Source: Amphiscolops sp. MND2022
Lineage: Eukaryota
Assembly: GCA_964187785.1 (NCBI GenBank)
Contig: OZ076421.1
Location: 49,042,001-49,106,000, forward strand
Reading direction: 5' to 3'
Length of the DNA: 64,000 nucleotides
Below the pieces are notes generated by a model that was given only the letters and a program-made list of their open reading frames with translations, was not told the origin of the DNA and searched no databases. The number at the start of each line of letters is the position of its first letter. Position 1 is the first letter of the stretch. Shown in pieces: positions 6,559-58,471 of the stretch. The translations under genes were made by a program, and so were the position numbers.

Positions 6559-6595
<37 letters not shown>

Positions 6596-9500: not shown

Positions 9501-12500
9501 GTCAAATTAAATTTCCCGCCCCCCTTTACGAAAGAATAATTTCTAAACCTTTCTTTTTATAAAAATTCTTTCAATAACAAGAGAAAACTTTGAAATGTTG
9601 ACTGCATATGCATTGACTGCATTTGACAAGCGGAGCTAGTCTAACAAGCAGACCAACCATATGTACATGTATGTGAATCGTCATTGCGATCGAAAGACCG
9701 CGGCGTGGGTAATTACATGTAATTAGCACAGCTAATAACTATACGTGTGATTCATTCCAATTTTGATACACTGTGCATACACTGTACACTGTACTACAGT
9801 GACTGTAGTTTATAGATGTATGTTACATAGTTTGCAGCTTGTTGCATTTGTCTTCTATTATTCAATACGTGCACGATAGAATGCTTCTATCTTATAATTT
9901 TTACCCTACACATTTATTTTGTTCGCAATTGCTGAATTTCCCTCGAGAATAACCAAGCTGGCTCATCGCGCAGATGCAAGGGTGAATACTTTACTTGCTT
10001 TTATTTGAAGAAATTTGGAAACCCCATTCTCACCTGATTCACTGCAAGATACCAATCTTTTCGAGTTGCAGTTCTTTTATAGCTGACTGGGTGAAAATTA
10101 CAGGTTAGATTTTTTTTTTCAACTTTTATTCATGATTATTTGAAATTAAACGATAAAATGTTGCTGACATACATATAACTTACTACATACAACATAAGGT
10201 GGATTCCCAAATAGCATAAGAGCAAATACAGACAAATATTCGACGTTTCGGTTGTTTCCCAGGATATTTGATTTTCTTTTCATATTATACTTTCTGATTT
10301 CGTTTTTAAGTTGTTTGCTCTTATGATTTTTGGTTTTTGTTACGCAATCATAACATAATAAATCATACATAAAACATAACAAATATAAGAATAATATATT
10401 TATTATATGTTATAAATTTATATGTATACATACCACATATAACATAGTAAAATATCAATTAGGATGAAAATCTTATTTTTTGAATTTCGTAGCATTCTGC
10501 CAAGCAGTTTTAATTTTATGATAAATTTTCATTGCTGAATCGTTTGAGAGAGAGCAATCCATTTCTTTCAAAATTGCATTAACCTCTGCAAATGCAATTC
10601 CTGGGTGAGTGTTGTAAAACAATTTGCATGCCTCTTTCTCCTGCTCTGTCCAGGGAATTTTAGCTGTACGAAATTGTTTCATGCTTTTCAGAAAACGTTC
10701 CTTGACGTCTGTCGTCTCGTTACAATTCGTTCTGGCTTTTTTTGCTGCATTAAAAGCGTTTTCGTCCTGTTCAATTTCTTCGCCAATTCTGTTGTCAGAC
10801 TGGTGTCGTCTCCTTTTTTTGTTGAATTTAAATCGAAAGTTGAATTTAGCGACACACGATTCCGCGGGATTGGCCTCGGCGTTCGCTTGGGCGATTCGGG
10901 GGACTCTTGAGGAGAGGCTTCCTCTGTTGCTTCCTCCTCCACCTCCGCCTCCTTCTCGTTTTCTTCGTCGTCTTCTTCCAGTTCATCTATCTCGTCCATT
11001 CGATTAAGTTCTTCGCGATACATTTGTAGGACGGCCCTTCTGTCGGCTCCACTAACTCCTGGGAAAAATCACATTTTCTTAAAAACTGTATTGTTTTGTG
11101 TTTGGATAAATTTTGTTTTAGATGTTTTATTATCGAATGTTTTCGGATAGGACGTAAATTCCGCGAAACACATAAACCAAGAAACGTAATGACCCAGACT
11201 TACTTCGATAATGTTTTGAAGCGGTCGCTTCCGAGTGAGCAGTTTGGGCGAAATGGGCTTCGCGCTGGTTGGGCTCAAGCTGCATTTCTGACACTCGTTT
11301 TTCCCAGAACTTTCTGACTGAGTTGGCGTTGAATCGCACTTCGTCTCCTTTTTCATTGAATATTTCCGCGAAACAATCGGTTATCAAATTGGCGATTCTT
11401 GTTTCTGGTGTCATGCGGCTGTTGGAGAAGACAAATTTTGGAGTGCTGCCATATTCTCGCTCCATCCTGGATCTTAACTCCAACATGAACAGTATCTGAT
11501 CTGATTCAACGGTTATTGCCACATCGTAATACTTGCCTGAAAAGAACAAAAATTGCAAACAAATCCTGGTTCAACTTTCGTTCAGAAGATTTTTTCATTT
11601 TACTCGTATTGTGTTTAAAATCCAAGAAACAACTCACCTGTTTTATGTTCGTTTGTCTCGTACGTGTAGCCCAGCCTCAAATGTGAATCGAAAACCTCCC
11701 ATGTTAGGTTCAGTAAAGGCCCAGATCGCACGTTCAACCTGACTTGCAGCAGGAAAAAATTCAGTGCTTTGACGTGGTTCAAGGGCAAAGTTTTCTCTTC
11801 GATATCTTTCGTCAGGATATCAATGACCTGCTGCTGTCTTCTGATAACTTGACTGAGGCTGGGGACACGGTCGAATCTTTCTTTAGCTCGTTCGTTTCTT
11901 GCCTTCGACATTGCATCTGCGTACCTCCGACGGGTGTCTCTCAAAGCTTTCTGCATTGTGGATAAACTGAAGTGTTTATCCATACGCCTCGATTCATAGG
12001 CGTCGCAGAATTCGATGAAGCTTTTGAAATGATTCAGATAAACACCCACAGTGGTTGGCTCCCAATTCTTGCGCAGCTCAAGTCTAAACAAAATGGTAGT
12101 TAGTTGAATGCTAGTTTTAATGATTAAAACAAAACTGGTTTTAAAATCCTGAGACGTGTTTTTTGTCGAAAGTTGAAATTTACCTTTCGAAAGCGGGTGT
12201 CAGATTTTTCGGCTCAGTCAAGCCCAGCGTATCCCCATAAACAATTGCAAGTACGTTTTTCAAGGCTTCCTTTCCTTTGACACTGTCACTTCCTTCAAGT
12301 GTTTCACCCCGCTTGCGGAATTCGTGATTCACGAAAGATGTAACCAAGGAAAAATGTTCGTCTCTTGGCAGGGAACTGTTTCTCAGTTTCATTCTGAGCT
12401 CAATGGGAAGTGACCTGTAAAAATCATCTAACTGTGAATGTCATCAATAAAATAATTTGTAACGAGACAAAGTCACAAATGCAACTTGGTATATTGTCAT

Positions 12501-15500
12501 TTCCATTTTTCGCTGTCCTATAAACGACAACAAACTTCATGATTGACACTTGCAAATTATCTTTTTAAACTATCAAAGGGGGATTTTGTTTTAACTCGAA
12601 ATCAATTTCAAACTTGAATCGTTTTCATATTAAAATGTCTCTCAAAAAACGAAAGAACGAGAAAACCACAACAAACCTTTTACTTTGGAAGTTGGGCACA
12701 ATTCTTATTTGTTCCATGTTGCAATTCTTGTGCCTTTTGTGGGCAGCTTTGTCGCTGAAGAGACGATTATGCTCCTCGCAGTAAAACACTTTTGTGTTGG
12801 CATGTAACTTCTGCATCCTCAAGAAGTCTTTGAGAAGGACGATATCTTCTTCTTTTAATTCGGGATGATGCGATTTGAAATGCTTGTCAATCCGTTTGGC
12901 CGCCTTTTCGCAAATCAAGCACTGCGTTATTTCGTCATACTTCGCTTTCTTTTCTGTCTTTTTTGGTGTTGATGGAGGGGCAGTTTCGTTTGGCAGCAGC
13001 GAGGTAGATGGGTCTGATGGTGGTTCCAAGCCTGGTAGCGACAAAGTGGAGTCAAGTTGAGATGAGGGGGAAGCAGCTGCTGATGAGGGCTCATGCGAAT
13101 CAACATCAAGCGACAAAGAGACGACTTCTGGTGATGGTGGTAGTGTTGGTGGCGCAAAAATTCGTTGAAGACAAATTTCACAGCGGCAATCTTGGTTCTG
13201 TGGGCCGAAGTAGTCGGGACCATAATACACAAAAATTTCCTCGTCAGCTTCTATTTGCCTCAGAGTTTGGATTCTCACTATAGTCGAGTTTCGAGTTTCT
13301 CCCCCGCATGCGTATTCTGCGTTGGGTTTGCAGCAGTGATTAATGAAACTAGCTGGTCCCAACATTATTCTCTCCTTTCCGTTTGATTTCGAACCAAACA
13401 GCGAAAAATCCGGAGCATTTGCGGGAGCGTCGGCCAGATATCCGTCGATTCCTGGAATTATAACTTTTTTCGGTAGTTTCTTTCTGGCTTTCAGTGCAAA
13501 TTCGAAATTGGTGCCTGAATAACTGTCTATTTCTGTATATTTAACATACTCGAATGACTGGGCGTATGATTTGGTCATTTCTTTGTGCAGTTTTCTGGCT
13601 CTTGCGTTCGGGCTGATTATATCGTAAATATCGCAGTCAAGATTGGTGTATTTGTGCGACTTACGGAACTCAGAATCAATGAACGTTGCAGTCAAATCTG
13701 CATCATTGCACCCCAAAATAAAATCTGGTCCCAAATTGTTACTTAGATTTGCATCAGTTGGATCTGGATCCTGAGAAGTGTCTTCGTTTTCCTCACTTGT
13801 GGCTACTGCATCAGTTTGTTTTGGATCCTCGTTTTCGTCATTTGCTACTGCATGAATTCGAGCTGGCAGGACTACAGGGGAAGTTGTCTCCATATCGTCA
13901 ATTTTCGCTAGCGCGTCATTTGTAAATTGAGTTGGCGGGACACCATGCGAACTCGTCTTTTCATCGTCATTTGTTGCTTCATCGTCATTTCTTGCTTCAT
14001 CATCATTTGACGCTTCATCGTCATATGTATTTGGATCCTCGGTACTCTTCTCGTTTTCGTCATTTGCTACGGAATGAAGTTGAGTTGGGGGGACATCATG
14101 AGAACTCGTCTCTTCATCGTCAATTGTTGCTTCGTCGACATTTGTTTTTGGATCCTCGGGACTCTTCTCGTTATCTTCATTTGCCACTGGATTAACTTGC
14201 ACTGGCGGGACATCATGAGATCTTGTATCCTTATCGTCGATGATTGCTGCTTCCGCATGTTTTTCATTTTTTCCTTCAGGACCCTCTTCAATCTCATCAT
14301 TTGCTACTGTATAAAACTGGGTTGGATCATGGGAAGTCTTTTCGTTTTCGTTTGACTTTAACGTATCAGAGCAAGTAAATTTCCTCCTGTTGCGACTTTC
14401 TAACCGAGTGTTTTGAAACTCCTTGTTTTCAACGTTTTTTGTTGCTTTCAAATCTTTCCGAGTGTTATGACTTTCCAACTCAGTCTTTTTATTCTGTTTT
14501 TTTTTCCGATAGGTGCTGTAAAACCTGTGGTTGTCCTCGTTTGCCGGGTAACTCTGCCATTGACGGAAGCTTGCGACCGTAGTGTTGGCATTGCGATATA
14601 AACGGAATTGACGAGGAGTTAAAATCAGAAGCTGTTAATTAGTATGAAAAATGAAGACTGAATATATAAGCTGAATCGAGGATTTTTATAAGACTGATAT
14701 GTAGGGCAGTTTTAAACTTTATGATTTGACCAGTTGGTTGTTGTGAGCTTGAATGGAAATAATGAAGTGCAAAATGGACTGGAAGTTATTGCATTTTAGC
14801 AAATGAAAACCAAATTAACTGATGAAGAATCAAGTAAAAAATACAAAGTGCAAGTTGGATTTAATTAGTTGTTGCAAGGTAACAGATTTGTTAATGCTTC
14901 CTAAATGCAAGTCGGATTCAGTTTTTGCATCTAGTTAATTATTGTCACATGAGACTTGAAGAACATTATCTATTCACTACTTAAATGAGTCGGAAACTGG
15001 TAGACTCAATTTAGCTGATGATGAAGGTGTGAAAATGTTTGCACGTTTAACATGGTAGGTCACCTCTCACGTGACTGGGCTCTACTCTCAACTGCTTTTC
15101 ATTCAGCAAGGTCAATTGTTCATAATTTTTCAAATTAATTTATTTAACTTATAAGGATAAAAGTTGCACAACTCTTCTTCTCATAGAATATGATGAGAAT
15201 GACATAATCATCAGCAGACTTGAAGACCTGCCACGTTGAGAAGCAATCGAAGTAAACAAACGAGATATGATCTAAACACCGATTCATTTTTGCAAATGAA
15301 CAATTTTTGGAAAAATTAAGGTTTTTGCTCAACAAAAACGAGACACAAAACGGGATGAAAATCAAACATAAGGTTAGAAACTTTGCAAGTTTAATAAAGG
15401 AATCAATCTAGAATATACAAATATGAACTTTATATTGATGACATAAATATATAATACTAGCAATAAAGTTCGCTAAAACTATAGATCCAATCGCGGGTTA

Positions 15501-16996
15501 TATTCTCAAGTAAAAATTTGCTTCAGCATAAATTGACATAACAAAAGTTACATTTGCAGCTGCTATGGCATAGTGGATGAATCTCTGCCCGGCATGACTT
15601 TGACGCGAGTTCAAATCCCGTAGGCGGGTGTTTTTTAGTTTTTGAATTGGGTTTTGATTCCTAAATATATATAAATTTTAAATAGATTTTATATATAGAG
15701 TTTTTTTTTTAATATATCTTTAGATAAGTAAATCTTAAAATCACAAATCATAATTACATGAAACTAGTTTGTACATTATACTTTTAACTCTCTATATTCC
15801 AAGACAGCATCAGAGCAAATAACAAAATATGAATGCTCTTTCTACTAAACAAGTTGAATTACTTCACCAAATGATTCGAACGGAAACCTTTTTGTACCTT
15901 TGTAGCAATTCCTGAGCTACTTTTTTTTCTCATTGGTTTTACTTTGCATGAATGTTCCTAAGGATACTAAACTAGGCTAAATTCATAAAATTATCACAGT
16001 TTTGGATTGGGAGGGTTTGTTTGAAAGTTGAGTTTGCCTCAAAACAATCTAATGTGATTGACCAAACGGGTTAATAACAACAATTCGACAAAAGCCGTTG
16101 TTCCTCAAGGGGTTCAGTTGGATTGCATTAGCCGGTGGACATGTGCAAAACCGAAACTTGGGCATGTATTAACGAAGCCTTTGCTCTGTTTTTGATATTC
16201 ATTCCGTGTATAAATCTAATTAACGCAGCTGATATTCAATTGAAGAAGAATTAGAATGTTTCATTTCAACTTGTTTTCATTTGTGTATTCGCATTTTAAA
16301 GATTTTTAAGAACGTCACTAGTGGAGCTTTGAAATGGAGTTTATCGCCATGAAACCCTGCAGAGGCCACGTTCTCGTCGTGGGTTTCGTTTTTGGTGACA
16401 CTATGTGTTCACCTAACTGAGAGCCTCTTTAAAATTACAACATACTGGGATTCGTGACACAAATTTGTGAATTGTCTTCGCAAATCTCACCTATGCCCGA
16501 CAAATTATTATAAATTTGCGCCATGTTGCATGTCTTCGATCAACTTGCAGCATTTTTAATAAAGTTCGAGTTACTAAATTTTTGAAAGAAAATGAAAATT
16601 CAATCAATTGATGAAACGTGTGAAAGTAACCTAACTAAAGCACCCTTTGAAATAATCAAGCTTCCCTCGAGTGCAATAGCAAAAAAATCTTCATCAAAAT
16701 TTTTCGAAAAAATTCGGCCATCTTGCAAAATTTAGTGCAAATTGTCATGACATGCCCATGCATCTTGGTAAAAAAATATTTTTTTTCAATTTTTTTTCTC
16801 TTGATGGGGATTTTTCCTTTTTAGCACCAAACGACTAGAACAGCTTCCAGAAGCACTCACTGTAAAAATTGTCTGCAAAATGTCACGGGAAAGTTTCTTT
16901 CGTAGGCCTTCCATCTTGCATACCAACTTGCACTGGTGATTTAGCAACTTGGCCTAATTTTTATTCAAATCACCCTTGCAACTTGGCACCAATTTT

Positions 16997-17077
<81 letters not shown>

Positions 17078-20000
17078 TGGAGTTTCATTTTAAATGACTG
17101 ACAAAAAACTGAAAGATTATCTGTCTGTTCCGTTTTTTTGGTTCACCTAGTATTTGGTGAAACGAAAGAATAGAACCCACAGAATATTACTCAATCTTCA
17201 AAGTCGTAATATTTGTAAACAAGACTGATAATCAATCACTCCTCTGTTCATCATCCTCTCGTTACGTGGTCAAATCTTCAAAGAATAATCCGAACCTAAA
17301 GGAAAAGTATAGACGTCTTAGCCAGTCATTCGTTCACGCTTTTGATGTTTCTTAGTTCTTTTTGCTTCGGAGAGAAGACTTCAAATTGGATGTCTGATAA
17401 GCTGAATAGCAATGTTCTGAGTTGTTTTCAAACCTTGTTGACGACAAGTATTTGAAACTTTGAGAGCTCAAAAATTTCCATGGGTTCCGTTTTTTCATGG
17501 GTTGCCTAGTAGCATCAGACTTCTTTCTGTCCAAGGAAACATTCTAGGTGCGCTTTTTGGGGGGAAAAATCGCAGACTTTCAGTTTTTTTGTTGAGTCCC
17601 ACACAGAAAGGTGTTTTTGTTAAATTTTTTAGCAGTTGGATTGTATCGTCTTTTTAATAAGCTTTTTATTAGCTTAAAGCATCGAAAAAACCCAGAGGTC
17701 CCTTAGGTGAAATGATTTATGTGCCACAGTGCCGAAATAGTCTTACGTGGACCTTTTGGTCTCTTGTAGTTCTATAGATTAGCTAAAATGGATCAGGTAA
17801 ACAAGAACCTTAATATTTTTACTTATCTGTTGAATGATATGTGCAGAACAACTTCAATAAAAAAAATTACATTCCGCAACTTTAACAAAAAACTTCCAAA
17901 GGCACCAGCCCACTTGATGGAAGCCTTATTACACGCAATAGAGAATGAGTTGTGCAATGAGAAATACATTTTTACTTTTTTTCCTGAATGATCCAAGTTT
18001 CTTGCAATGCAGTGTAGCCTGAGAAAACAATACCCTGAGTTCTTAAGAAAACCAGGGACCGAATCGAGAAGCGACAGTAACTGTTCGTATGAGTCACCCC
18101 TAGTCTTCGAGCGACGTGGTTAAGGACTAGTGAATACTCAAGTAAGTAAAGAGAGAAAAACTCATGCTTGGATGTAACCTCTTGTAAACAAACGATTTTT
18201 TAACTGTTTAATGGAAAAATTAGTACTGAAGTCTAGTTGAAACATGATGGAAGGTTTTCATCCCTATTTGAACTTTTTGATTGTTCTCGAGATTTTAGAC
18301 AAAAAGTCTGTTTAAAACTTCAAGCCCGTGTTCAAATTCACTGTTTTTGGTGACTCAAAACAGGAAGTCCTTGAATTTCTCATTAGGACGGTGTGAATTC
18401 ACAAAGAAAAATAGTGTGAACAACGTTTGTATCTGGCTTCTGAACTGCCATCCTGAAAAATTGAAATCGTATGTTTCTGGTTAGGTTTCCACTATTTTCA
18501 CTAATATTCCAAATAAAATTTAGGCGGTGAGGTAAAACAAAAGTACCATATTTATCATTTAAACTACCTATTTTATTCACAATCTACAGTCTGTTAAGTC
18601 AAAATTGACAACAATTGTAAACTTTCTCATTAAAGTTTTACCAACACAACAGGAACAATTTCTTTCACATTGACAACAATTTGGAAACTTTTTTAACGTT
18701 TTACCAACACAACAGAAACAATTTTTTTACATTGTACGAGAAATCAACAACACGGCTAAGTCTTAATCAGCAGAAATTAGGTACAAACATCAACATACTT
18801 ACATACATCTGAGTTTCGGGAAATCAGAGCTTTCGGTTGGTATGAAAAAAGCTGAAATTCAGTCACTTGTTTTTCGTAAAACTTGATTTGAAAAATGTTG
18901 TCAATTTTGCCGTAACAGACTGTATTATTCTCATAAAATAGATATTCTTGACTTCGAGTATCAAACAACATCTTTTTAGCGGTCATTCTCAGTGACGATG
19001 AAGATGATGATGACATTGACCTGGGCGACTGCTTCGAGGTCACTCGCTATGACGTCAAAGGGGTCAATCAGAAGACAACAGGTCAAGACGAAGATGATAA
19101 TGATGATACTAGTTCAGCTGCGAGCAGTATTCTGTCTGAAGACAGCGACTCCGGTTGGAAACCATTCCCGAAATCTTTTTGAACCACCGTTTGAATTATC
19201 ATGAATGACGAAAAAAATTTAAATGTTTTAAATATGTATTTTCACAAGTTTTGATCCGAACTTATGACAAACTGATCATTCTGAAAACAAGACGCCCTCT
19301 ACGCACCGGGATATTTTCCGCCTTCAATTGGCTAACAATAGACGTCTAATCGAAAATTTACCTCCTCCGTGGTAAAACGCAATTGACTTCGGATATATTG
19401 TCAATTGTCAAAAGTTCCGGTATAGCGTGCTGGGACAAATGGGAGCGCTTGTTTTCGAACCTCTCCTTCCTTCTCCTTAGTAAAACGCAATATTAAATAT
19501 AAAGTGGAGATTTGGCAAAATTAGGAAAAGATACGCAACACAGATTATGATTTTCCACCCCCATACGCAAATAAATTCGTGGGGGCGGAAAATGAAAAAA
19601 TTCGAAGTCCTGTTTTTATGCCTTGGAAGTGTGTTGTTGGTGTAAGTGAACCCTAAATTCAACCTTCAATTTTAACTGCTGTCAATTGTTGAGGTCTTTC
19701 AAAAAACTATACTTTAGTTCGCTCCTTTCTATGAAAGCGCCTATTGAAAATGAACACCGTGGTAATCCGGATTCTAATTCTTCGAATTGATTCGTGATAA
19801 AATTGAATTGTGACAAGGTTGTTAAGGTGTTTTATTCATCAATAACACAAGAAAAAACATGAATAAACCAATTTTTAAAGTTTTTTCAGACACTTTTCAA
19901 TTGAAAAAATTCAATGAAGTGAATAACTTTCATGCTTCATATTCCTTCGGGCAATGAAATATTTGAAAACAAATGAAAAGCCGTTTTGCATAACACATTG

Positions 20001-25870: not shown

Positions 25871-26059
25871 GGCTGATAAAAACTGTATATAAATGAACTG
25901 CATCTACAAATATTTTTTAACCTTGGAAAATATATGTTGCTTTTCTTCATCGATTCCACGATGCGATGAACATACCAGCACAGAGTTCGAATGCTGCTTG
26001 TCTCTTGGCTCCCCAAATCAAGGAAATCAAAACTATATTTCATTAATATTAATATTAAC

Positions 26060-32125: not shown

Positions 32126-32589
32126 TTAAGCAAAAATTTTCGCTAAACCAAACAAGAGTAAGAGGGGTTAGGGTTAGGGTTATTTTTATGATCCTTCATA
32201 TTATCCTTCAATTGTACAGCACCTGCAAACGTTTAAATGCAAAAAGTCAATTTTCAATTTTCATTGTAAAGGGAAGGTTTTTAATTTCAGTTGAGCCACG
32301 AACTAAAAAGAAAATGAAAAGCACATCTTGTAAACTTTTTTTAGTTCACAATAATGATGAGTGGAACCAGTTAGAAAACATCCAGCTGAAGCTCAATAGG
32401 TAACAAATCCAAAGGGTACGCACGTTGCAATAAGTAGAAATCAAAAATAACATTCCATAAAACAAAAAGTGCTGTTTGAAAGTTAACTATTTCTATCGTC
32501 AGTACATTTGATTTTTTCTACACGACTTGTGTACCAATGTAACACTCCCCCATTCTATCGCTTATGCAATATAAAAACTCAAAAGCACA

Positions 32590-44500: not shown

Positions 44501-47500
44501 AGGCCATGCAAAAGAATTGGAATAAATGAAAGCTGTTCTTATTCCTCCCCACGGAGCTCCTCACCCCCTCCCCCAACTCTCCCTTCATCATGGGCATCAA
44601 GAGGAAGGGAGTACCCAAGGCCAAGGCCTAAAAAGTTGGGCGAGAAGTATTACATTCTTGAAAATGTCTGCATAACTTGGGCAGCGATGAACGTCAAAAC
44701 CAGAGGTCGATTGTGTTGGCAATATTGAGCAAACTGAGTCAAAGGTTCCTCTAAGGAACAATTTGGGTACCTCAAAAGTGATTTGGAAACCAGAAATGAA
44801 AAGTTGAAGGAATGCACCGGATGTCACGCTGTTTATAAACTTTGCCTCGATGGCGGGAAACTGAATATTGCCCATGCAAGAGGCCATGCAAAAGAATTGG
44901 AATAAATGCAAGCTGTTCTTATTCCTCCCCACGGAGCTCCTCACCCCCTCCCCCAACTCTCCCTTCATCATGGGCATCAAGAGGAAGGGAGTACCCAAGG
45001 CCAAGGCCTAAAAAGTTGGGCGAGAAGTATTACATTCTTGAAAATGTCTGCATAACTTGGGCAGCGATGAACGTCAATACCAACACTCGTAGCAAAAAGC
45101 GCAGTGGTCGAGGAACTGGACTCTTTGTTATAAACTTTCACAGGACGACAATCCTGGGAAAGGAAGGGATCCACATCATTGATAAACCGAGCAAGACAAT
45201 GAGGAGAGTCGGTTGCATCCACAACGAGTGATTCACGAGGACCAGGCTCAGTACTATACAACTTTTATCAGAATTGACCTAGAGACCATGGAGCGACTTA
45301 ATTTTATATCTTTATTTCATTTAGATTTTATTCATTAATTATGTGACGACAATCCCCCTTTAACACCAACAAAGTTACCAACATTGGAGGGTAAAAATGC
45401 TCTGTTCTCAAAAGTTCTCCAAAAAATCCTATCTTTGTTTGTGCTTCGAACTCGCTCAGCTCCAGATTATCGAAGAAACACGACCTAGTTCTCTATACAA
45501 ACCTGGTGCCCAAACAACACATAATAAAGCTGTTCGTGGAGATTTTATTGGAAGGCAGTGAAGACGACAAGAACAATGGCGTCAACTCCAGCTTTAGCTA
45601 ACTTCCCATCCCTCCAAGTGTGCAGGGATCTGAGCAGAAGCCCTCACGAATCACAAATGAAGATTTTGAAACTGACAACCAAAAAGTTTGTCTGTACAAA
45701 AAAGATACTGGAGAGGCTTCGTTATGACGAAAATGACTGACACAGAGTACCTTGTGAGACTGCCTGATCTTGGATTAATTGTTCAAGTGAAGAAGTGGCG
45801 ATTAAGCAATGCCTTTTTCATAGGACCTGAACTTGAATTGATCAAGTTTTTTGGACTCAGAAAGTGGTGTACACTTTTCAAAGATAATTCACTTCAGCAA
45901 TACAAAACGACGACAATAGAGCATTTGAAGAATTTGCTGTACGATATTCAGAGGAAACCAATCAACTTCTTCACGGTCAGAAAGTGAGAAGTTCGAGACG
46001 AAAAGAGCAATGGCGTCAACTACAGCTTTAGCTGGCTTCCCACCCCTCCAAGTGTGCAGGGTTTTCACTGTCTCGAAAAAAGTTCACTGTCTCTAAAAAC
46101 TTCTGAAGAATGTTTTTCTTCACCCATTCACTCAACTTATAATACTGTACTTACCTAATACCCTATTATTAAAATGTTTCCCTTTTGTTTTTTAAATTTT
46201 GTTGCGTGAAAAACTTTGACACCATAGTTTCTGCTAATCGGCAAATCGTCATTGATCTGAGCAGAAGCCTATACGAGTCACAAATGAAGATTTGGAAACC
46301 AGAAGTTGAAGAAACATGGCCTATATGTGGAAACAATGCAGTTACTATAAAAAACACAGAATCCCAAACAACACATGGTGCAGTTGTTTGTGAAGATTTT
46401 CTGTGGACCATAATCATTATTTTATATCTTTATATCATTTGAATTTTATTCATTAATAAATTATGTGAAGACAATCCCCCCTTTGACACCAACAAAGTTA
46501 CCAACATTGTAGGGTAAAAATGCTCTGTTCTCAAAAGTTCTCCAAAAAAATCCTATCTTGGTTTGTTCTTCGAACTCACTCAACTCCAGATTATTGAAGA
46601 AACACGACTTAGTTCTCTATACAAACCTGGTGACCAAACAACACATGATAAAGCTGTTCGTGGAGATTTTATTGGAAGGCAGTAAAGACGACAAGAACAA
46701 TGGCGTCAACTCCAGCTTTAGCTGGCTTCCCATACCTCCAAGTGTGCAGGGATCTGAGCAGAAGCCCTCACGAATCACAAATGAAGATTTGAAACTCACA
46801 ACCAAAAAGTTTATTGTCTGTACAAAAAAAGATACTGGAGAGGCTTCGTTATGACGAAAAATGATTGACCACATAGTACTTTGTGAGACTGCCTGATCTT
46901 GGATTAATTGTTCAAGTGAAGAAGTGGCGATTAAGCAATGCCTTTTTCATAGGACCTGAACTTGAATTAATCAAGTTTTTTCGACCCAGAAAGTGGTGTA
47001 CACTTTTCGAAGATAATTCACTTCAGCAATACAAAACGATGACAATAGAGCAATTGAAGAGTTTGCTGTACGATATTCAGAGGAAACCAATCAACTTCTT
47101 CACGGTCAGAAAGTGAGAAGTTCGAGACGAAAAGAGCAATGGCGTCAACTACAGCATTAGCTGGCTTCCCACCCCTCCAAGTGTACAGGGTTTTCACTGT
47201 CTCGAAAAAAGTTCACTGTCTGTAAAAACTTCTCAAGAATGTTTTTCTTCACCCATTCACTCACCTTATAATACTGTACTTACCTAATACCCTATTATTG
47301 AAATGTTTCCCTTATGTTTTTTAAATTTTGTTGCGTGAAAAACCTTGACACCATAGTTTCTGCGATTCGGCAAATCGTCATTGATCTGAGCAGAAGCCTA
47401 TACGAGTCACAAATGAAGATTTGAAAACCAGAAGTTGAAGAAACATGGCCTATAAGTGGAAAGAATGCGGATACTGTGAAAAACACAGAATCCCAAACAA

Positions 47501-50500
47501 CACATGGTGCAGTTGTTCGTGAAGATTTTCAATGGACCATAATCATAATTTTATATCTTTATATCATTTAAATTTTATTCATTAATAAATTATGTGAAGA
47601 CAATCCCCCCTTTAACACCGACAAAGTTACCAACATTGGAGGGTAAAAATGCTCTGTTCTCAAAAGTTCTCCAAAAAATCCTATCCTTGTTTGTGCTTCG
47701 AACTCACTCAACTCCAGATTCTCGAAGAAACACGACCTAGTTCTCTATACAAACCTGGTGCCCAAACAACACATAATAAAGCTGTTCGTGGAGATTTTAT
47801 TGGAAGGCAGTGAAGACGACAAGAACAATGGCGTCAACTCCAGCTTTAGCTGGCTTCCCATCCCTCCAAGTGTGCAGGGATCTGAGCAGAAGCTCTCACG
47901 AATCACAAATGAAGATTTGAAACTGACAACCAAAAAGTTTATTGTGTGTACAAAAAAAAGATACTGGAGAGGCTTCGGTATGACGAAAATGATTGACGCA
48001 GAGTACTTTGTGAGACTGCCTGATCTTGGATTAATTGTTCAAGTGAAGAAGTGGCGATTAAGCAATGCCTTTTTCATAGGACCTGAACTTGAATTAATCA
48101 AGTTTTTTCGACCCAGAAAGTGGTGTACACTTTTCGAAGATAATTCACTTCAGCAATACAAAACGATGACAATAGAGCAATTGAAGAGTTTGCTGTACGA
48201 TATTCAGAGGAAACCAATCAACTTCTTCACGGTCAGAAAGTGAGAAGTTCGAGACGAAAAGAGCAATGGCGTCAACTACAGCATTAGCTGGCTTCCCACC
48301 CCTCCAAGTGTACAGGGTTTTCACTGTCTCGAAAAAAGTTCACTGTCTGTAAAAACTTCTCAAGAATGTTTTTCTTCACCCATTCACTCACCCTATAATA
48401 CTGTACTTAACCTAATACCCTATTATTGAAATGTTTCCCTTATGTTTTTTTTTAAAATTTTGTTGCGTGAAAAACCTTGACACCATAGTTTCTGCGATTC
48501 GGCAAGTCGTCATTGATCTGAGCAGAAGCCTATACGAGTCACAAATGAAGATTTGAAAACCAGAAGATGAAGAAACATGGCCTATAAGTGGAAAGAATGC
48601 GGATACTGTGAAAAACACAGAATCCCAAACAACACATGGTGCAGTTGTTCGTGAAGATTTTCAATGGACCATAATCATTATTTTATATCTTCATATCATT
48701 TAAATTCTATTCATTAATAAATTATGTGAAGACAATCCCCCCTTTAACACCAACAAAGTTACCAACATTGGAGGGTAAAAATGCTCTGTTCTCAAAAGTT
48801 CTCCAAAAAATCCTATCTTTGTTTGTGCTTCGAACTCACTCAACTCCAGATTATTGAAGAAACACGACCTAGTTCTCTATACAAACCTTGTGCCCAAACA
48901 ACACATGATAAAGCTGTTCGTGGAGATTTTATTGGAAGGCAGTGAAGACGACAAGAACAATGGCGTCAACTCCAGCTTAAGCTGGCTTCCCATCCCTCCA
49001 AGTGTGCAGGGATCTGAGCAGAAGCCCTTACGAATCACAAATGAAGATTTGAAACTGACAACCAAAAAGTTTGTCTGTACAAAAAAAAGATACTGGAGAG
49101 GCTTCGTTATGACGAAAATGGCTGACGCAGAGTACCTTGTGAGACTGCCTGATCTTTGATTAATTGTTCAAGTGAAGAAGTGGCGATTAAGCAATGCCTT
49201 TTTCATAGGACCTGAACTTGAATTGATGAAGTTTTTTGGACTCAGAAAAAGGTGTACACTTTTCAAAGATAATTCACTTCAGCAATACAAAAGGATGACA
49301 ATAGAGCATTTGAAGAATTTGCTCTACGATATTCAGAGGAAAGCAATCAACTTCTTCACGGTCAGAAAGTGAGAAGTTCGAGACGAAAAGAGCAATGGCG
49401 TCAACTACAGCTTTAGCTGGCTTCCCACCCCTCCAAGTGTGCAGGGTTTTCACTGTCTCGAAAAAAGTTCACTGTCTCTAAAAACTTCTGAAGAATGTTT
49501 TTCTCCACCCATTCACTCACCTTATAATACTGTACTTACCTAATACCCTATTATTAAAATGTTTCCCTTATGTCTTTTAAATTTTGTTGCGTGAAAAACT
49601 TTGACACCATAGTTTCTGCGATTCGGCAAATCGTCATTGACCTGAGCAGAAGCCCATACGAGTCACAAATGAAGATTTGAAAACCAGAAGTTGAAGAAAC
49701 ATGGCCTATATGTGGAAACAATGCAGTTACTATAAAAAACACAGAATCCCAAACAACACATGGTGCAGTTGTTTGTGAAGATTTTCAATGGACCATAACA
49801 ACCAACTTGCTTTTATGTCTTTATATCATTTAAATTTTATTCATTAATAAATTATGTGAAGACAATCCCCCCTTCGACACCAACAAAGTTACCAACATTG
49901 GAGGGTAAAAATGCTCTGTTCTCAAAAGTTCTCCAAAAAAATCCTATCTTTGTTTGTGCTTCGAACTCACTCAACTCCAGATTATTGAAGAAACACGACT
50001 TAGTTCTCTATACAAACCTGGTGCCCAAACAACACATGATGAAGCTGTTCGTGGAGATTTTGTTAGGAAGGAAGTGAAGACGACAAGAACAATGGCTGAT
50101 GACCCAAGAGCAAAGGGAGTACCCAAGGCCAAGGCCTGAAGAGTTGGAGAAGTGTTACATTCCTAAAAAATGTCTCCATAACTTGTGCAGCGATGAACGT
50201 CAAAACCAGAGGTCGATTGTGTTGGCAATATTGAGCAAACTGAGCCAAAGGTTCCTCTAAGGAACAATTTGGGTGCCTCAACTGTGATTTGGAACCCAGA
50301 AATGAAAAAATGAAGGAATGCACCGGATGTCACGCTGTTTATAAACTTTGCCTCGATGGCGGGAAACCGAATATTGCCCATGCAAGAGGCCATGCAAAAG
50401 AATTAGAATAAATGCAAGCTGTTCTTATTCCTCCCCACGGAGCTCCTCACCCGCTCCCCCAACTCTCCCTTCATCATGGGCGACAAGAGGAAGGGAGTAC

Positions 50501-52923
50501 CCAAGCCCAAGGCCTAAAAAGTTGGGCGAGAAGTATTACATTCTTGAAAAATGTCTGCATAACTTGGGCAGCGATGATCGTCAATACCAACACTTGTAGC
50601 AAAAAGTGCAATGGTCGAGGAACCAGACTCTTTGTTATAAACTTTCACAGGACGACAATCCTGGGAATGGAAGGGATCCACATCATTGATAAACCGAGCA
50701 AGACAATGAGGAGAGTCGGTTGCATCCACAACGAGTAATTCACGAGGACCAGTCTCAATACTATACAACTTTTATCAGAATTGACCTAGAGACCATGAAG
50801 CGACTTATTTTTATCTTTACATCATTTAAATTTTATTCATTAATAAATTATGTGAAGACAATCCCCCTTTAACACCAAAGTTACCAACATTGGAGGGTAA
50901 AAATGCTCTGTTCTCAAAAGTTCTCCAAAAAAATCCTATCTTTGTTTGTGCTTCGAACTCACTCAACTCCAGATTATTGAAGAAACACGACTTAGTTCTC
51001 TATACAAACCTGGTGCCCAATTAACACATGATGAAGCTGTTCGTGGAGATTTTGTTAGGAAGGAAGTGAAGACGACAAGAACAATGGCTGATGACCCAAG
51101 AGCAAAGGGAGTACCCAAGGCCAAGGCCTAAAGAGTTGGAGAAGTGTTACATTCCTAAAAAATGTCTCCATAACTTGTGCAGCGATGAACGTCAAAACCA
51201 GAGGTCGATTGTGTTGGCAATATTGAGCAAACTGAGCCAAAGGTTCCTCTCAGGAACAATTTGGGTGCCTCAACTGTGATTTGGAACCCAGAAATGAAAA
51301 AACGAAGGAATGCACCGGATGTCACGCTGTTTATAAACTTTGCCTCGATGGCGGGAAACCGAATATTGCCCATGCAAGAGGCCATGCAAAAGAATTAGAA
51401 TAAATGCAAGCTGTTCTTATTCCTCCCCACGGAGCTCCTCACCCGCTCCCCCAACTCTCCCTTCATCATGGGCGACAAGAGAAAGGGAGTACCCAAGCCC
51501 AAGGCCTAAAAAGTTGGGCGAGAAGTATTACATTCTTGAAAAATGTCTGCATAACTTGGGCAGCGATGATCGTCAATACCAACACTTGTAGCAAAAAGTG
51601 CAGTGGTCGAGGAACCAGACTCTTTGTTATAAACTTTCACAGGACGACAATCCTGGGAATGGAAGGGATCCACATCATTGATAAACCGAGCAAGACAATG
51701 AGGAGAGTCGGTTGCATCCACAACGAGTAATTCACGAGGACCAGTCTCAATACTATACAACTTTTATCAGAATTGACCTAGAGACCATGAAGCGACTTAT
51801 TTTTATCTTTACATCATTTAAATTTTATTCATTAATAAATTATGTGAAGACAATCCCCTTTTAACACCAAAGTTACCAACAATGGAGGGTAAAAATGCTC
51901 TGTTCTCAAAAGTTCTCCAAAAAAATCTTTGTTTGTGCTTCGAACTCGCTCAACTCCAGATTATCGAAAAAACACGACCTAGTTCTCTATACAAACTTGG
52001 TGCCCAAACAACACATAATAAAGCTGTTCATGGAGATTTTATTGGAAGGCAGTAAAGACGACAAGAACAATGGCGTCAACTCCAGCTTTAGCTGGCTTCC
52101 CATCCCTCCAAGTGTGCAGGGATCTGAGCAGAATCCCTCACGAATCACAAATGAAGATTTGAAACTGACAACCAAAAAGTTTGTCTGTACAAAAAAAGAT
52201 ACTGGAGAGGCTTCGTTATGACGAAAATGACTGACGCAGAGTACCTTGTGAGACTGCCTGATCTTGGATTAATTGTTCAAGTGAAGAAGTGGCGATTAAG
52301 CAATGCCTTTTTCATAGGACCTGAACTTGAATTGATCAAGTTTTTTGGACTCAGAAAGTGGTGTACACTTTTCAAAGATAATTCACTTCAGCAATACAAA
52401 ACGATGACAATAGAGCATTTGAAGAATTTGCTGTACGATATTCAGAGGAAACCAATCAACTTCTTCACGGTCAGAAAGTGAGAAGTTCGAGACGAAAAGA
52501 GCAATGGCGTCAACTACAGCTTTAGCTGGCTTCCCACCCCTCCAAGTGTGCAGGGTTTTCACTGTCTCGAAAAAAGTTTACTGTCTGTAAAAACTTCTCA
52601 AGAATGTTTTTCTTCACCCATTCACTCACCTTATAATACTGTACTTACCTAATACCCTATTATTGAAATGTTTCCCTTATGTTTTTTAAATTTTGTTGCG
52701 TGAAAAACCTTGACACCATAGTTTCTGCGATTCGGCAAATCGTCATTGTTCTGAGCAGAAGCCTATACGAGTCACAAATGAAGATTTGAAAACCAGAAGT
52801 TGACGAAACATGGCCTATAAGTGGAATGAATGCGGATACTGTAAAAAACACCGAATCCCAACCAAAATGGTGCAGTTGTTCGTGAAGATTTTCTATGGAC
52901 CATAATCAACTTAATTTTATATC
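32590..52923 (+). repeat. 20.3-kb tandem array: partial unit + 18 units (13 type A ~1.10-1.13 kb, 5 type B ~0.99 kb, one B with a 380-bp internal duplication)
   Basis: Anchor TGTGA(A/C)GACAATC at 32991(B), 33988, 35084, 36210, 37337, 38463, 39590, 40713, 41843(B), 42837, 43968(B*), 45342, 46464, 47593, 48725, 49855(B), 50851(B), 51843; near-identical ORFs recur in the ORF track with the same spacing. Confidence 0.97.
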
Positions 52924-53616
52924 GGACTTGGTTATAGATGACGACTTGGTTGCAGCGAGGGACTTGGTTTTAGTTGAGGGGCGTCCCGACGCTGTTGCTT
53001 TCAATGTTTTTTGATAGAAATCACTTTCTGTTTCTTTTGGAACAATGTAGTTTTTGGCAGCAGTTTCTTTGGTGTGGGACGACTGAATTGCGTGGAAAGC
53101 ACGAGCCTCGGTGGGAATTTCATCAGAATGATAATGAAAATTTGTGTCCCACATTTTTCGAATGGATGTCCCGTTGTAGTCTTTCTCCAGAACCTCGTCG
53201 TCAAAAAACTTGCTGAGGACCTTTCGAATAGTTGCGGGCATAGAATGATCTTTTTTGTCTTTTGAAGTGGCAAAAACTAGTTTCAGGCGAAAACCACACT
53301 TCTTGAATTCGGACATCAAACGCTGAAGCCAAGGGAATTGTTCTTCGCTAATTTTGATCTCTTGATCGTAGTAATGACCCGTTTTATGTTTGTCAGATGT
53401 GCGTTTCCCATGCTTCTTGATTCTCTTCACATCGTCATAGGTCAAATCCATTAAGGGTCCAACACGTCCATTCATTGTACTTGACAGAGTTATGAAATTG
53501 AAAACTTTCAGCTCTTCAAATGACAAGTTTTCCTCGGCGAGATCTTGGTTGCAAAGTTCTTCAATTCTTTTCACAACGAATGTCACTCCTTCCATCTCCG
53601 GTACTTTTGTGAACAA
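52906..53616 (-). CDS. Tyrosine recombinase catalytic domain (R-K-R-H-Y retained), 236-aa open segment
   Basis: Motif-by-motif alignment with the YR at 12083-11204; the last codons run into array DNA. Confidence 0.85.
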   Translation of the reverse strand: MFTKVPEMEGVTFVVKRIEELCNQDLAEENLSFEELKVFNFITLSSTMNGRVGPLMDLTYDDVKRIKKHGKRTSDKHKTGHYYDQEIKISEEQFPWLQRLMSEFKKCGFRLKLVFATSKDKKDHSMPATIRKVLSKFFDDEVLEKDYNGTSIRKMWDTNFHYHSDEIPTEARAFHAIQSSHTKETAAKNYIVPKETESDFYQKTLKATASGRPSTKTKSLAATKSSSITKSDIKLS

Positions 53617-54657
53617 TTCTCGCTTCGAACGCTTCTTCTCCTTCAGGGAACTTTTCTGATACTTCCTTCTGACATCTTAAATGATTTGTTGCGAATCATT
53701 TTCCATAATCGCAGGAATCGCGGTTCTTTTGTAGGCCTTAATGAATTCTACCATCTTCTCGAAGAGAATCAGATAATTCACCATTGTCGACCGGGTGATG
53801 TATCTTTCGCTGAGGTAAGTTTTAACGAAAACAGCTAAACTGGTTGGTTCTGCAAAACTGTTGGAGGCATCGATTGCTCGACAGAGAAAAGAAAACTGGG
53901 TTGTTGAAACGTTCCACTTTCCTGAGACATCCCCATCCTCAAAGAGACCTTTTTCATGTTTGACAAGTTTCCACGAGTTCTTTGTGAGGCAAGAGAAATT
54001 GGGTCCGGAACTGGTTAACAGCAATTTTGATATTCTGAGGAAACAAATCAACTTCTTCACGGTCATGAATACGTTCAATTGGATGGTTTTTTGGGTGCTT
54101 TCCTCGATCGCCGAATTTAACTGAACAATTATCACACTGGTAACATCGATGCGTTTTGAGGGTGGAATGGTATTAGGAGATGAACTTCAGCAGCTTGTCC
54201 TCGGATCCAATGGAGTGTTTGTTGGTCAAATGGTCCCTCATTTTCTTCACTTCTTTGTGACACAGCAGACACGTCTCCACCTCTGGTCGCTTCGGTTTGT
54301 TGTTTTTAGACACTACTGTGATACGAAAGTCAATCTCTGAGCTGTGGCTTTCATTGGAACTTGTGTCGTTGGAGTCTGATTCTCTTTGTTCTACATACTC
54401 ACTTTCTGACTGTCCCATAAAATCAAATTCAACAGTTTGTGCTACTTCCACAATTTCTGTAGCTCCAACAGGAGGAAGATCGACTAAGTCCAATGACGTG
54501 CCTTCTCGAATAAACTTCGACTCAATGACGGTTCACCAGCAAAATTCATCATTGCAGCTTCATTCTCAGGACTTTCATTTTGTTCCCATGTTTGATGGTC
54601 ATCAGACGAAGAGGGTAAATGTTGGTTTCTTTGTTGCGTTTGAGTTCTTAGTTGGGT

Positions 54658-54790: not shown

Positions 54791-54814
54791 CTCGTCATTG
54801 ATACTTGGTTACCT

Positions 54815-56461
54815 CAGGGTGACCACTTCGTCAGAAATTTCTGACCAGTCAGAAATGGTCAGAAATCGAACCTAGGTCAGAAAACGTTTCTGACCAACGA
54901 AGAATAGCTAACTATTTATTGTGATATTTATTAGGAGTTTTCTAACATTGAAGTTATGTTTAATTAAAAATTTTTTTTTCAGATTCATGGGGATCTGTAA
55001 GTTCCAAGATTTTTGGAAGACTTTATTCAGCTGGGTATTACCCGTTCCTGAAAATGCACATAAGGCCAAATGCAAGCATTGCCCTGGAAAATTAATTGAC
55101 ATAAGATGTGGCAGTCAAGCACTGAAGCGTCACGAAGCTTGCAGTATTCATATGAAAGCGGTAACTTCTGTAGCTGGTTCAAATATTGTGGCCCAAATGC
55201 AGGCAGGTACCTCTGTGGAAGAAGGAAAAGTTGTTTTACTTCATTGCCTCAAACTTGTTCTAGACGGGCATTCTCTACGGTCTAGCGATTGTTGTTCCCG
55301 TTCAAGAGTTGTTCCCTGACTCCAAATACGCGGATATTAACTGCGGTCGTACCAAAGCTGGTTACATTGTCAAATTTGCACTTGGTTCATATTGCAAGGA
55401 ACTCATTATTTGTGAAATGGCTGACAAGCCGTTCGCAATACACGTGGACGAGTCGATGTATCATAGTAAAGTGCGCCTGGAGTTTTGGGTAATTCATTTT
55501 GTGAAACAAATTCGCAGTGTCCGATACCTGACTACCATCGAGTTGAAGACAAATTTTGATGTGAGCGTTTCAATGAGTATCTTATTAAACGATTATTAAT
55601 TCGGTTTAATAAATTTCTTGGATCACAAATTGTGAGGAAAATGTATATCATTTTCCAAAGTTCGCTGGTTTATTCGGATGTGACAATTCGACATTTGAAA
55701 GACCTTTCGCAGAGATTTAATTTATCCCCCACTGACGTTGCGGACGACTATGCGAAACTCAGGGTCAAAATAACAACGGAATTCAAGTTATTAAATCTTT
55801 TTCTTGAAAACGAGTTGACAGAATTTCCTTGCATCTCCAAATTAGTGGAGTGTTGTTCAGTGCTCTGTCCGCATAATATGATGGTAGAGTCAGGTTTCAT
55901 TAAAATGAAGTTCTTCGAAGATAATTATCAAGCTAACTTCAGTGTTGATATGTACAACAGCTTCCGACTTGTGGCGGATAATTTTTCCCGGGATGCTTTC
56001 GAAGATTTCAAGCCGACGGAACCACTTCTAAAATTGGCCCAATCAGCATCAAAAATGTACAAAGATGAACAGAGCAGTCTTCAAGAAGTCGAAAAAAGTG
56101 ATAACAAAAAACATGTCGAAGTTCTGGTTTTTAAGCGGAAAGCAGATAAAGCGTTGGACAGAGCTCCAAGAAGCAGGAAAAGAACTCGCCGAAGCAGAGA
56201 TTGCATTTGTTCAAGCTAAAAAACGCAAACAAGAACTGGAAGCGATGAAAAGTGGTGTAATTGCCCGACGAGACAATGTATCTGATGAAATAATTTCTTC
56301 TATGTTCAGTTGAATTTCATTTTTCATCCATATATGTTTTCATTCAGAATGTTGGAACGATGCGGGACGATAATTTTTGAATTCATATTGTTCTTTTTCA
56401 GATCAGAACTTGTAGATTTTTGGTAGGTCAGAAATTTGAGTTGATCGAAGTGGTCACCCTG
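54815..56461 (+). mobile_element. hAT-superfamily DNA transposon, internally deleted, 1647 bp
   Basis: 16-bp perfect TIR CAGGGTGACCACTTCG; 8-bp TSD GGTTACCT at 54807-54814 and 56462-56469; BED finger (CKHC..LKRHEACSIH), FPDS..CGRTK, AIHVDES and a dimerisation-domain remnant. Confidence 0.93.
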
Positions 56462-57519
56462 GGTTACCTTGAGTTTTTTGTTGGCTTGAATCTTGGTTGC
56501 TCATTGTTTCTTCTCGTTCTATATCATTGTTGTGAGCTTGACACATGTTGTCAAACTCCCGCAATGTTCCAGGTGAGTACCCGCACATCAACGCTTCAAC
56601 TCTGATGAGGTTTCATGGGGACCACTTTGTTTAACTTTCGTTGGGACGCAGTTGAAGTAGAACTTGCAGTCTCCTCCTCACTCGCAACTGTTTTCTTCTC
56701 TTTTTCACAACGATGTCTTTCAACGACGACATCCAATCGAGAACACGGCTGTTTCTTCGTCTGCTTGGATGTTTCAGCTTTTCTCCAGAATTTCATGACA
56801 CGCCAAGGCGCTTCTTTTGTGCCGTAGCTGTAGCGCAGCTCCTCGTTCTCATCGATGACCCTTGTAGCAAAAGGTGCAATTGTCCAGGGACCAGTCTCTT
56901 TGTTGTAAACTTTCACAGGACGACAATTCTGGGAATGAAAGGGATCCACATCATTGATAAAAACTAGCAACACAATGAGGAGAGTCCGTTGCATCCAGAA
57001 CGAGTAATTCAGGGGCACCAGTCTCAATACTAAAAATGTTGTCAGAACATTCCGCCTGGGTCTTCACTTGCCCACGATAGTTCAGAAGAAACTCGTCTTT
57101 TCTGAATGAACGCAAAACGAACAAACCACGGCCAGCTCTGGGTACATCCCTGACTTCGACGTGAGGGGGTCTGACTCGAGAAAGGCAAAGGGATCATTGG
57201 CAGAAGTGCATGAATCGTGCCTTAAACACGCCTTTTGTCGCAAGGAGGGCATCTTCAAAACTGAACAAATTGACAGACGAACAGAATTGGAAAAGTGGCA
57301 GACGTAGAATAGAAGAGACTAGAATATAAAACTGACAGACTTGAAGGATAAATTAAAAGAAACTGGATTGGACTGAGACAAAAATAGATGTTTCAAAAGA
57401 CTGAAGGAGGACTGTTTTAAAGGGCTGACTGAATGAGGTGGATGACTGGATTGAACTTCTGAAGAGGAAGAAATGAACTGACGTTGACTGCTGAATGTCT
57501 GAATGATTGGACTGAAAGA

Positions 57520-57770: not shown

Positions 57771-57919
57771 AAAATTGATCTGAAAAACGCAAAACATTTT
57801 GAATACTGGACTATTTGATAGATTGAGTAATCGGTAACGGTAGCTGTAGCAGTCAAACCCTTGATTTAGATATTATACGAGAATGTTTGTTGGTATATTT
57901 TACTGATTTGAGGGGATTA

Positions 57920-58471
57920 GAGAGAATATTCAGTTTGGCCGAAGTTGACAAAACATGGCCTCTATGTGGGAAGAATGCGGATACTATTTAAAACACGCAG
58001 AATTCCAAACACTACATGGTAGAGTTGTTCGATGGTAACCGCTGTGCAAGGTCATTCCGGAACATTCGGGTCATGGAAAATATGGAAATGCTAGCACAAG
58101 ATGTTTCGGATCTACGATACTCGTTGATGCCAGACCCTGTTCTTGGAAAAGCAGCACGTCCCGCAAAGTTGATGTTGAAGAATCCTGACTTACTGGAGAA
58201 GGTAAAGACCAAATTGGGTTCTTACGAGATCGATTGTAATGGCACTATGCAGCAAACTGAGCCAAAGGTTCTTAAGGAACCATTTGGGTGCCTCAACTGT
58301 GGTGTGATAACCAGAAAAGAGAAGTTGAAGAAATGCATCGGATGTCACGCTGTTTATTACTTCTTCAGTGATTGTTTCAAAAAAGACTGGAAAAAAACCA
58401 GCCGATTCCAGCAGCGTGAACACGGTGATTGCCTTTTTCTCAGACAAACATGGACCCGAGTTACAATCTAA
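57920..58471 (+). pseudogene. Tudor-like + MYND-type zinc finger gene, degenerate, divergent from SET-YR2
   Basis: MYND-like CLNC..KLKKCIGCHAVYY..SDC.KKDW (one Cys lost). A Tudor-like SLAEVDKTW/YVGRMRIL/KHYMVELFDGNRCARSFRNIRV is assembled across frameshifts and is the weaker call. Confidence 0.55.

Follow-up and report, generated by a model that had tools for sequence, protein, structure and literature searches.

Two damaged transposon copies in Amphiscolops sp. join a SET domain to a tyrosine recombinase and probably represent a Crypton-like family

The window analyzed here is a stretch of 64,000 nucleotides from Amphiscolops sp. MND2022 (assembly GCA_964187785.1, contig OZ076421.1, positions 49,042,001 to 49,106,000 of the forward strand), a eukaryotic genome with spliceosomal introns. 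Two loci on its minus strand (element 1 at 14.6-10.5 kb and element 2 at 57.3-52.9 kb) encode the same series of domains: a SET domain, two C2H2-like fingers and a tyrosine recombinase (YR). Both are true copies of a SET-recombinase transposon, and each of them is damaged. The damage to both copies, the foreign insert in element 2 and the satellite of its own family that element 2 abuts were absent from a preliminary description of this DNA, which had reported a shared finger and shared recombinase motifs. All of the motifs that it quoted are present in minus-strand frames, and the YR regions of the two elements are homologous (about 27% identity, tblastn E 1e-10 to 1e-14). The shared finger is likewise present in both loci, where the first finger is of the C-x2-C...H-x4-H type and is followed by the second, and the finger regions match each other weakly (E 0.008). 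The part of the window from 42906 to 63595 is 100% identical to one contig of the European Nucleotide Archive (ENA) assembly ERZ25074608, and L001, L004, L005 and L014 are considered paralogous loci in the same genome because they lie on contigs of that assembly.

Element 1 and its gene comprise the following features:
6559..17086, minus strand: element 1, a mobile or duplicated unit of about 10.5 kb including the flanking microsatellites (98.2-98.4% identity to L001 5497-16282)
6559..6593, no strand: left (ATA/AAT)n microsatellite at the element boundary (read directly)
6603..6758, no strand: left subterminal CAAGTTGC repeats, candidate recombinase binding sites (motif count, repeats I2 and D17)
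16921..16985, no strand: right subterminal CAAGTTGC repeats, in the opposite orientation to the outermost left copies (motif count, repeat comparison)
16999..17076, no strand: right (AAT)n microsatellite at the element boundary (read directly)
12677..14591, minus strand: exon 1, with the N-terminus, acidic repeats, SET and two fingers (domain and homologue comparison)
about 13730-13150, minus strand: SET domain of KMT5B/C type within exon 1 (FS 13410-13393, NH 13347-13321, CxCxxC 13188-13171)
12921-12865 and 12783-12730, minus strand: two C2H2-like fingers (motifs read)
12184..12414, minus strand: exon 2 (GT-AG junctions match those of homologues P0002 and P0003)
11638..12083, minus strand: exon 3, N-terminal half of the YR (Arg I 11731-11699, HKTG 11647-11636)
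11204..11536, minus strand: exon 4, YR (Arg II 11324-11301, His...Tyr 11240-11208)
10473..11058, minus strand: exon 5, encoding an acidic linker followed by a conserved helical domain at the C-terminus (in L001 one open exon of 183 amino acids)

The similarity between element 1 and L001 5497-16282, which lies on another contig of the same assembly, ends sharply at both boundaries; (AAT)n tracts bracket both units, and the outer flanks are unrelated. The CAAGTTGC motif has seven matches in the window against 2.8 expected, a count that was reached in 0 of 100 shuffles, and six of the seven are no more than about 170 bp from one or the other end of element 1. Its outermost copies form an inverted pair. 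Inverted sequence near these ends is limited to an 11-bp core. Open reading frame (ORF) and domain scans of the unit revealed no reverse transcriptase (RT), no long terminal repeats (LTRs) and no other coding-looking ORF besides the SET-YR gene. A Glu/Gly-rich repetitive ORF at 7957-8440 (plus strand), in the non-coding 3' part of the unit, has no family match and is probably a low-complexity repeat.

The gene of element 1 has five exons, and its four GT-AG introns, one of which splits the HKTG-KYYD motif, agree exactly with those of its homologues. When the five exons of L001 are spliced in the model, they yield an intact protein of 1236 amino acids. The window copy carries two frameshifts, one at an A9 versus A7 run near 14505 and the other at an A-run that is 1 bp shorter near 10821 (exon 5). 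These homopolymer frameshifts could be assembly errors; nevertheless, real mutation is favored because P0176, with five amino-acid differences, carries the identical truncated ORF. The cluster of exon 1 at 90% identity contains 10 distinct proteins from about nine contigs, four of them with an intact MPTLRSQ start, and at least 10 distinct copies of this exon (at least 90% identity) are on record. Element 1 is a member of a lineage that is young and multi-copy and has (AAT)n at either side.

The recombinase assignment was based on structure, because Pfam and a sequence profile against PDB found nothing. The AF2 model of the YR, built from a 52-row alignment, has a mean predicted local distance difference test (pLDDT) score of 93.2. 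The best 50 Foldseek matches in PDB are all tyrosine recombinases, and the best 30 among Swiss-Prot structures are all XerC/D (probability 1.0, TM about 0.5). Comparisons with VIA-align, which span about 250 residues and both domains, gave Z values of 13.7 for XerH, 12.8 for XerA, 11.8 for Cre, 11.5 for the Tn1549 integrase and 10.7 for lambda Int. Arg I, the HKTG lysine, Arg II, His II and Tyr are each retained in 46-48 of the 52 sequences. The predicted structure thus confirms a tyrosine recombinase fold.

The SET domain of element 1 (hereafter SET1; Pfam SET, E 2.4e-7) points to one particular family. The window sequence matches SUV420H1/2 chains at 2.5e-13, the next best other match being at 0.016. 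The SET1 family profile (alignment A4) matches KMT5B at 7.9e-25 (91 bits over about 160 positions, from the N-flank through the post-SET) and KMT5C at 2.4e-21; the next family, KMT2C, follows at 8e-8, leaving a family-specific gap of 56 bits. The SET of the homologue P0072 is also KMT5B-specific (1.9e-8 versus 0.0035 for the next). Invariant columns of A4 include the FS motif, MLGP..F.NH.C..N, the SET-C tyrosine and C.C..C. These specific matches and invariant motifs agree with the Suv4-20-like label of the preliminary description, and SET1 is therefore well supported, by sequence, as a KMT5B/C (Suv4-20) type domain with the predicted active-site serine, NH motif and post-SET cysteines. In Suv4-20h2, Ser161 of the FS motif forms a bond with the target lysine and determines product specificity (PMC3874154); Ser161 and Phe191 were mapped onto SET1 by alignment only. 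SET1 shares the FS (Ser161) motif, the NH motif, the SET-C tyrosine and CxCxxC with KMT5B and KMT5C, but, unlike them, it is joined to fingers and a recombinase inside a transposon.

Element 2 and the features associated with it are arranged as follows:
56599..57252, minus strand: SET of type 2 (NDVD at 56961-56923; frameshifts near 57190 and in a T-run near 56965)
54900..56600, plus strand: foreign insert in the linker of element 2, opposite to it in strand and resembling the remnant of a hAT transposase (absent from L004, L005 and L007)
54095..54271, minus strand: two C2H2-like fingers (in-frame TAA at 54175-54173 between them)
52909..53979, minus strand: YR (Arg I 53469-53437, HKTG 53388-53365, Arg II 53169-53146, His...Tyr 53079-53047)
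52383..52562, minus strand: exon for the C-terminal domain (WRGGKPAKAV..., resembling the C-terminus of L007), inside the first satellite unit
32586..52923, minus strand: tandem array of about 20 kb of element-2-family pieces (3' region, SET fragments, MYND-ORF fragments)
58016..58471, plus strand: supposed 'reader' ORF, a degenerate MYND-type zinc finger (stops 26 bp before the BEL/Pao start at 58497)

Element 2 is a dead copy, a fossil that has lost its 3' end, carries a hAT-like insert and is broken by two in-frame stops and three frameshifts; within its YR, a frameshift near 53960 and an in-frame TAA at 53679-53677 belong to this damage. The ORFs of the insert (about 1.7 kb) have a CxxC...H...H motif of BED-like type and a C-terminus that resembles the hAT dimerisation family, and 93 of the 100 Atlas hits of its ORF 55632-56219 belong to the hAT dimerisation family (lead-level evidence). 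The 5' side of element 2 is cut by BEL/Pao at 58497, and its 3' side merges into the satellite: homology with full-length relatives stops at about 52912-52924, where the array starts, 17 bp before the YR ORF ends. The array has a unit of about 1.13 kb plus larger higher-order units, made up, in permuted order, of fragments of SET2 and of the MYND ORF together with the C-terminal exon and its 3' region. It may have arisen as a satellite from transposon copies that were tandemly arranged and deleted. Relatives of element 2 that are intact or almost so are L004, in which the SET ORF adjoins P0030 (1065 amino acids), L005, L007 (from another sample, with ORFs of 285, 744 and 114 amino acids) and L014.

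The SET domain of element 2 (SET2) belongs to a different subfamily from SET1, as the preliminary description had stated: an hhalign comparison of the two gave a probability of 18% over only 44 columns, with only the generic core in common. Its label as PR-Set7/SETD8-like, however, was not confirmed. Intact SET2 paralogues match Pfam SET at 7e-9 and 2e-11, and the pieces from element 2 itself match only NSD3 (E 0.018). The SET2 profile ranks KMT2A first (2.8e-8, 36 bits), followed by EZH2 (1.5e-6, 31 bits), KMT2B, EZH1 and KMT5A (3.8e-5, 26 bits), with NSD1, SUV39H2 and SETD2 close behind and no family-specific gap; the L004 SET alone gives KMT2A at 0.0011, SETD2 at 0.0027 and KMT5A at 0.01. 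This profile is shallow because the SET2 family is rare in the database searched, where a sequence search with the L004 SET returned no relatives and one with the L005 SET only three proteins. The AF2 model from a five-row alignment has a pLDDT of 35. The alignment between SET2 and KMT5A ends at the YSYG glycine, leaving the C-flank unmatched, and the window, L004, L005 and L007 copies as well as the satellite fragments carry FINDVD where SET enzymes carry NHS. The histidine of the NHS motif was reportedly found by Rea et al. in 2000 to be needed in SUV39H1. SET2 and KMT5A are alike in having a short SET without cysteine-rich flanks and in their significant profile match; they differ in that KMT5A is not the best match, in the NDVD that replaces NHS and in the C-flank. 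By sequence, SET2 is best described as a small SET without cysteine-rich flanks whose matches do not single out one specificity; PR-Set7 may be a relative, but it is not the best-supported one.

The ORF at 58016-58471 had been put forward as a putative reader gene, a role that its sequence does not support. Its zf-MYND match is borderline (Pfam E 2e-4, under the curated cut-off) and was the sole Pfam match at E<=1, so that no Tudor domain was detected at that threshold. Nearly all of its Atlas neighbours are zf-MYND. The CxxC...CxxC half is retained in satellite copies and the second half is degenerate, and no homologue of the ORF was found beside L004, L005 or L007. MYND fingers are protein-interaction modules and are not known to read methyl-lysine.

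The order of SET, fingers and YR is found well beyond the window. P0072 contains all three within one single ORF, and in L014 they share one frame that is broken by one stop. The same order occurs in L002, L004, L005, L007 and L013, and altogether order and orientation are constant in at least eight loci from at least four samples. Besides the exon 1 cluster of element 1, other assemblies contain further clusters, with 6-24 members each. The gene layout of the family comprises an N-terminal SET, an acidic repeat linker, two C2H2-like fingers, a two-domain YR and a small C-terminal helical domain.

The SET domain is not fixed to one recombinase lineage. The maximum-likelihood tree of the YR has 38 rows (midpoint root for drawing only), and the SET state is known for a minority of them. 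The four labeled SET2 elements lie within one starred six-row clade (100/99), and the KMT5B-type SET is found at two points far apart, in the L001/L002 clade and in P0072. Members without a SET are interspersed (P0061, P0084 and P0092, with no SET in L008-L012). With so few known SET states, gains and losses are not countable on this tree. The clearest case of exchange is provided by L014 and L005, whose SET2 regions are identical at 98% of DNA and 96% of protein positions over a length of 150 codons. A stretch of about 450 bp immediately upstream, which runs into the first SET codons, is 97% identical. Only this 5' module is common to the two loci: their in-frame YRs are 30% identical, and the YR of L014 is nearest to P0041 (57%), in the sister clade. 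A near-identical SET2 module attached to such distant recombinases indicates a recent transfer of the 5' module between lineages. The proposal of the preliminary description that SET modules were captured or swapped is in line with this observation, which supports movement of SET modules between YR lineages of the family.

Tandem copies are found in several loci. L005 has two head-to-tail copies 4.6 kb apart, and L014 has a second SET-bearing ORF 8.9 kb downstream of the first SET, in equal orientation. L008 and L009 (sample ERZ25067548, contigs tagged '_c') contain SET-less finger-YR genes of 711-721 amino acids in head-to-tail arrays with periods of 3.5-4.2 kb, on low-coverage contigs flagged as if circular; these arrays could be concatemers or extrachromosomal circles of the element. 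Head-to-tail tandems and the satellite are what would be expected if circles integrate into copies already in place; for the low-coverage 'circular' contigs, however, concatemers may be an artefact. L014 also contains a perfect (AGT)62 microsatellite at 5831-6017, 2 kb upstream of its SET2-YR gene. It fits a microsatellite association in a second lineage, with a repeat unit unlike the (AAT)n of element 1.

We consider it likely that both loci belong to one Crypton-like family of DNA transposons in an animal genome, with a YR, short end repeats and a single gene but neither RT nor LTRs, and that the family moves by the following mechanism. The fingers and/or the subterminal CAAGTTGC repeats would guide the recombinase, and the element would be excised as a circle that keeps one (AAT)n tract. 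The circle would re-insert by site-specific recombination with a genomic (AAT)n tract, and recombination into resident copies would generate head-to-tail tandems. The tethered SET would methylate nucleosomes at the element or at its target, in the case of SET1 converting H4K20me1 to me2, and SET modules would be exchanged between recombinase lineages.

Crypton DNA transposons (Goodwin 2003; Kojima and Jurka 2011, PMC3212892) are among the nearest known counterparts of the SET-YR family. The family resembles them in that the YR is the sole mobility enzyme of multi-copy elements without RT, LTRs or long terminal inverted repeats, in that one short sequence is found at both ends, as recombination between a circle and its target predicts, and in that introns are allowed in the genes and accessory domains vary between lineages, for which shuffling has been proposed. 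It differs from them in having SET as the accessory domain, a whole (AAT)n microsatellite rather than 4-6 bp as the terminal repeat, and N or T in place of the first tetrad His, without a DUF3504 match. Cryptons have been described as DNA transposons that rely on a YR only and end in identical short sequences; they are thought to move via a circle, and their described accessory domains are GCR1_C, C48 peptidase, DDE and HTH, with no mention of SET (PMC3212892). Active Cryptons of Chlamydomonas (CryptonF-1_cRei) have a 5-bp terminal motif matched to the target, and their gain of copies is unexplained (PMC9977147). The association of a tyrosine recombinase with simple tandem repeats also has a parallel in endogenous nimaviruses, whose integration into telomere-motif microsatellites is associated with such an enzyme (PMC10871703); these are, however, viruses with giant genomes, and their YR family is unrelated and not fused to a SET. 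A SET-recombinase transposon fusion was not found described in the full-text literature searched; Repbase and Dfam lay outside this search. SETMAR is a primate single-copy host gene that arose from transposon capture and contains a SET and a mariner DDE transposase. It likewise combines a SET methyltransferase and a transposon recombination enzyme in one polypeptide, but the SET-YR fusion is the transposon's own multi-copy gene and contains a tyrosine recombinase.

Several observations weigh against the Crypton-like assignment and the activities that it implies. The YR has no Pfam Phage_integrase or DUF3504 (CryptonA) match at E<=1, its profile has no match in PDB by sequence at E<=10, and at the position of the first His of the R-H-R-Y tetrad, three residues before Arg II, the 52 sequences have N (27) or T (20) but in no case H. 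The likeness to Cryptons was judged from architecture and fold, not from grouping with a named clade (F, S, A or I). The (AAT)n flanks could be either a target preference or a part of the element, and neither an empty site nor a circle junction was seen. As for SET1, both the window copy and L001 have Tyr at the residue mapped to Phe191, a position occupied by either Phe or Tyr in the family as a whole, and a Phe-to-Tyr change at Phe191 is reported to cripple Suv4-20h1 (PMC3874154). The dN/dS ratio of the SET between young copies (omega 0.8 and 1.4) is based on only 6-8 changes, too few to judge, and selection is not evident.

Other explanations of the two loci fare worse. It is very improbable that they are domesticated host genes, that is, recombinase-SET fusions comparable to the Crypton-derived ZMYM or KCTD1. 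Spliceosomal introns, the missing first catalytic histidine and a chromatin-writer domain that suits a host regulator would be in keeping with such an origin, but the near-identical 10.5-kb copies with sharp ends lie at unrelated loci, many of the at least 10 copies are frameshifted and element 2 is full of stops. Arg, Lys, Arg, His and Tyr are conserved and head-to-tail tandem copies exist, and the domestication scenario was rejected on these sharp-ended multi-locus copies, damage, tandems and catalytic residues. There is hardly any chance that SET and YR are separate genes, accidental neighbours brought together by nested or adjacent repeats. Repeats are densely nested here (BEL/Pao, hAT and satellite), and SET and YR are called as separate ORFs in most loci; nevertheless, accidental proximity was rejected because of the single ORF of P0072, the L014 frame that is open bar one stop, the L001 splice model and the constant order and orientation.

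The preliminary description had further proposed that the family converged on one histone mark. In its full form, two lineages would independently have taken both enzymes of the H4K20 pathway (PR-Set7 for me1 and Suv4-20 for me2/3), with element 2 adding a methyl-lysine reader gene. This scenario, which we regard as unlikely, draws on the KMT5B/C type of SET1, on KMT5A being among the significant SET2 profile matches, on the lack of pre- and post-SET cysteine modules in SET2, whose 'YSYG...APW' tail recalls KMT5A by eye, and on one Atlas neighbour cluster named 'set-1-like'. Against it, KMT2A and EZH2 stand above KMT5A for the profile, a single SET2 sequence puts KMT2A and SETD2 first, the NDVD replaces NHS in every member with the KMT5A C-flank unmatched, and the supposed reader is MYND-like, with no counterpart beside L004, L005 and L007. 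Only SET1 is of the H4K20 type, and convergence on that mark is not supported; the two-step pathway is not borne out for the second SET, because SET2 scores higher against H3K4 and H3K27 writers than against KMT5A and has no NHS motif.

Under the Crypton-like interpretation, the part that SET1 might play in mobility can be stated more specifically, although we hold this version to be quite doubtful. The KMT5B-type SET would write H4K20me2 where the element integrates or on its excised circle, and proteins that bind this mark, such as ORC1 or 53BP1, might be recruited. The circle could then replicate or be tolerated, a possible explanation of how Cryptons gain copies, and the writer would be a swappable cassette (KMT5B-type, NDVD-type or none). 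Transposons are normally the targets of histone methylation rather than sources of the enzymes, and here a recombinase is fused to a Suv4-20-type SET that is retained across many lineages and swapped as a module. If the chromatin-writing interpretation is true, this would be a natural mobile element that writes chromatin marks on its own DNA. The family offers testable handles on microsatellite-directed site-specific integration in an animal and on the mode of Crypton copy gain, and it is a source of compact, naturally fused 'recombinase + writer' proteins.

Two further features of the window lie outside the elements. The region 58497-64000 contains a BEL/Pao element with a partial tandem duplication, in which 58497-59978 and 62524-64000 are 99.5% identical with a period of 4027 bp; the polyprotein of the first unit (59104-62535) breaks off once the RT and Peptidase_A17 part is complete, and a full-length polyprotein then begins anew. 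Directly before the satellite, the region 28000-32000 has a strong GC skew (+0.38 to +0.43) across about 4 kb.

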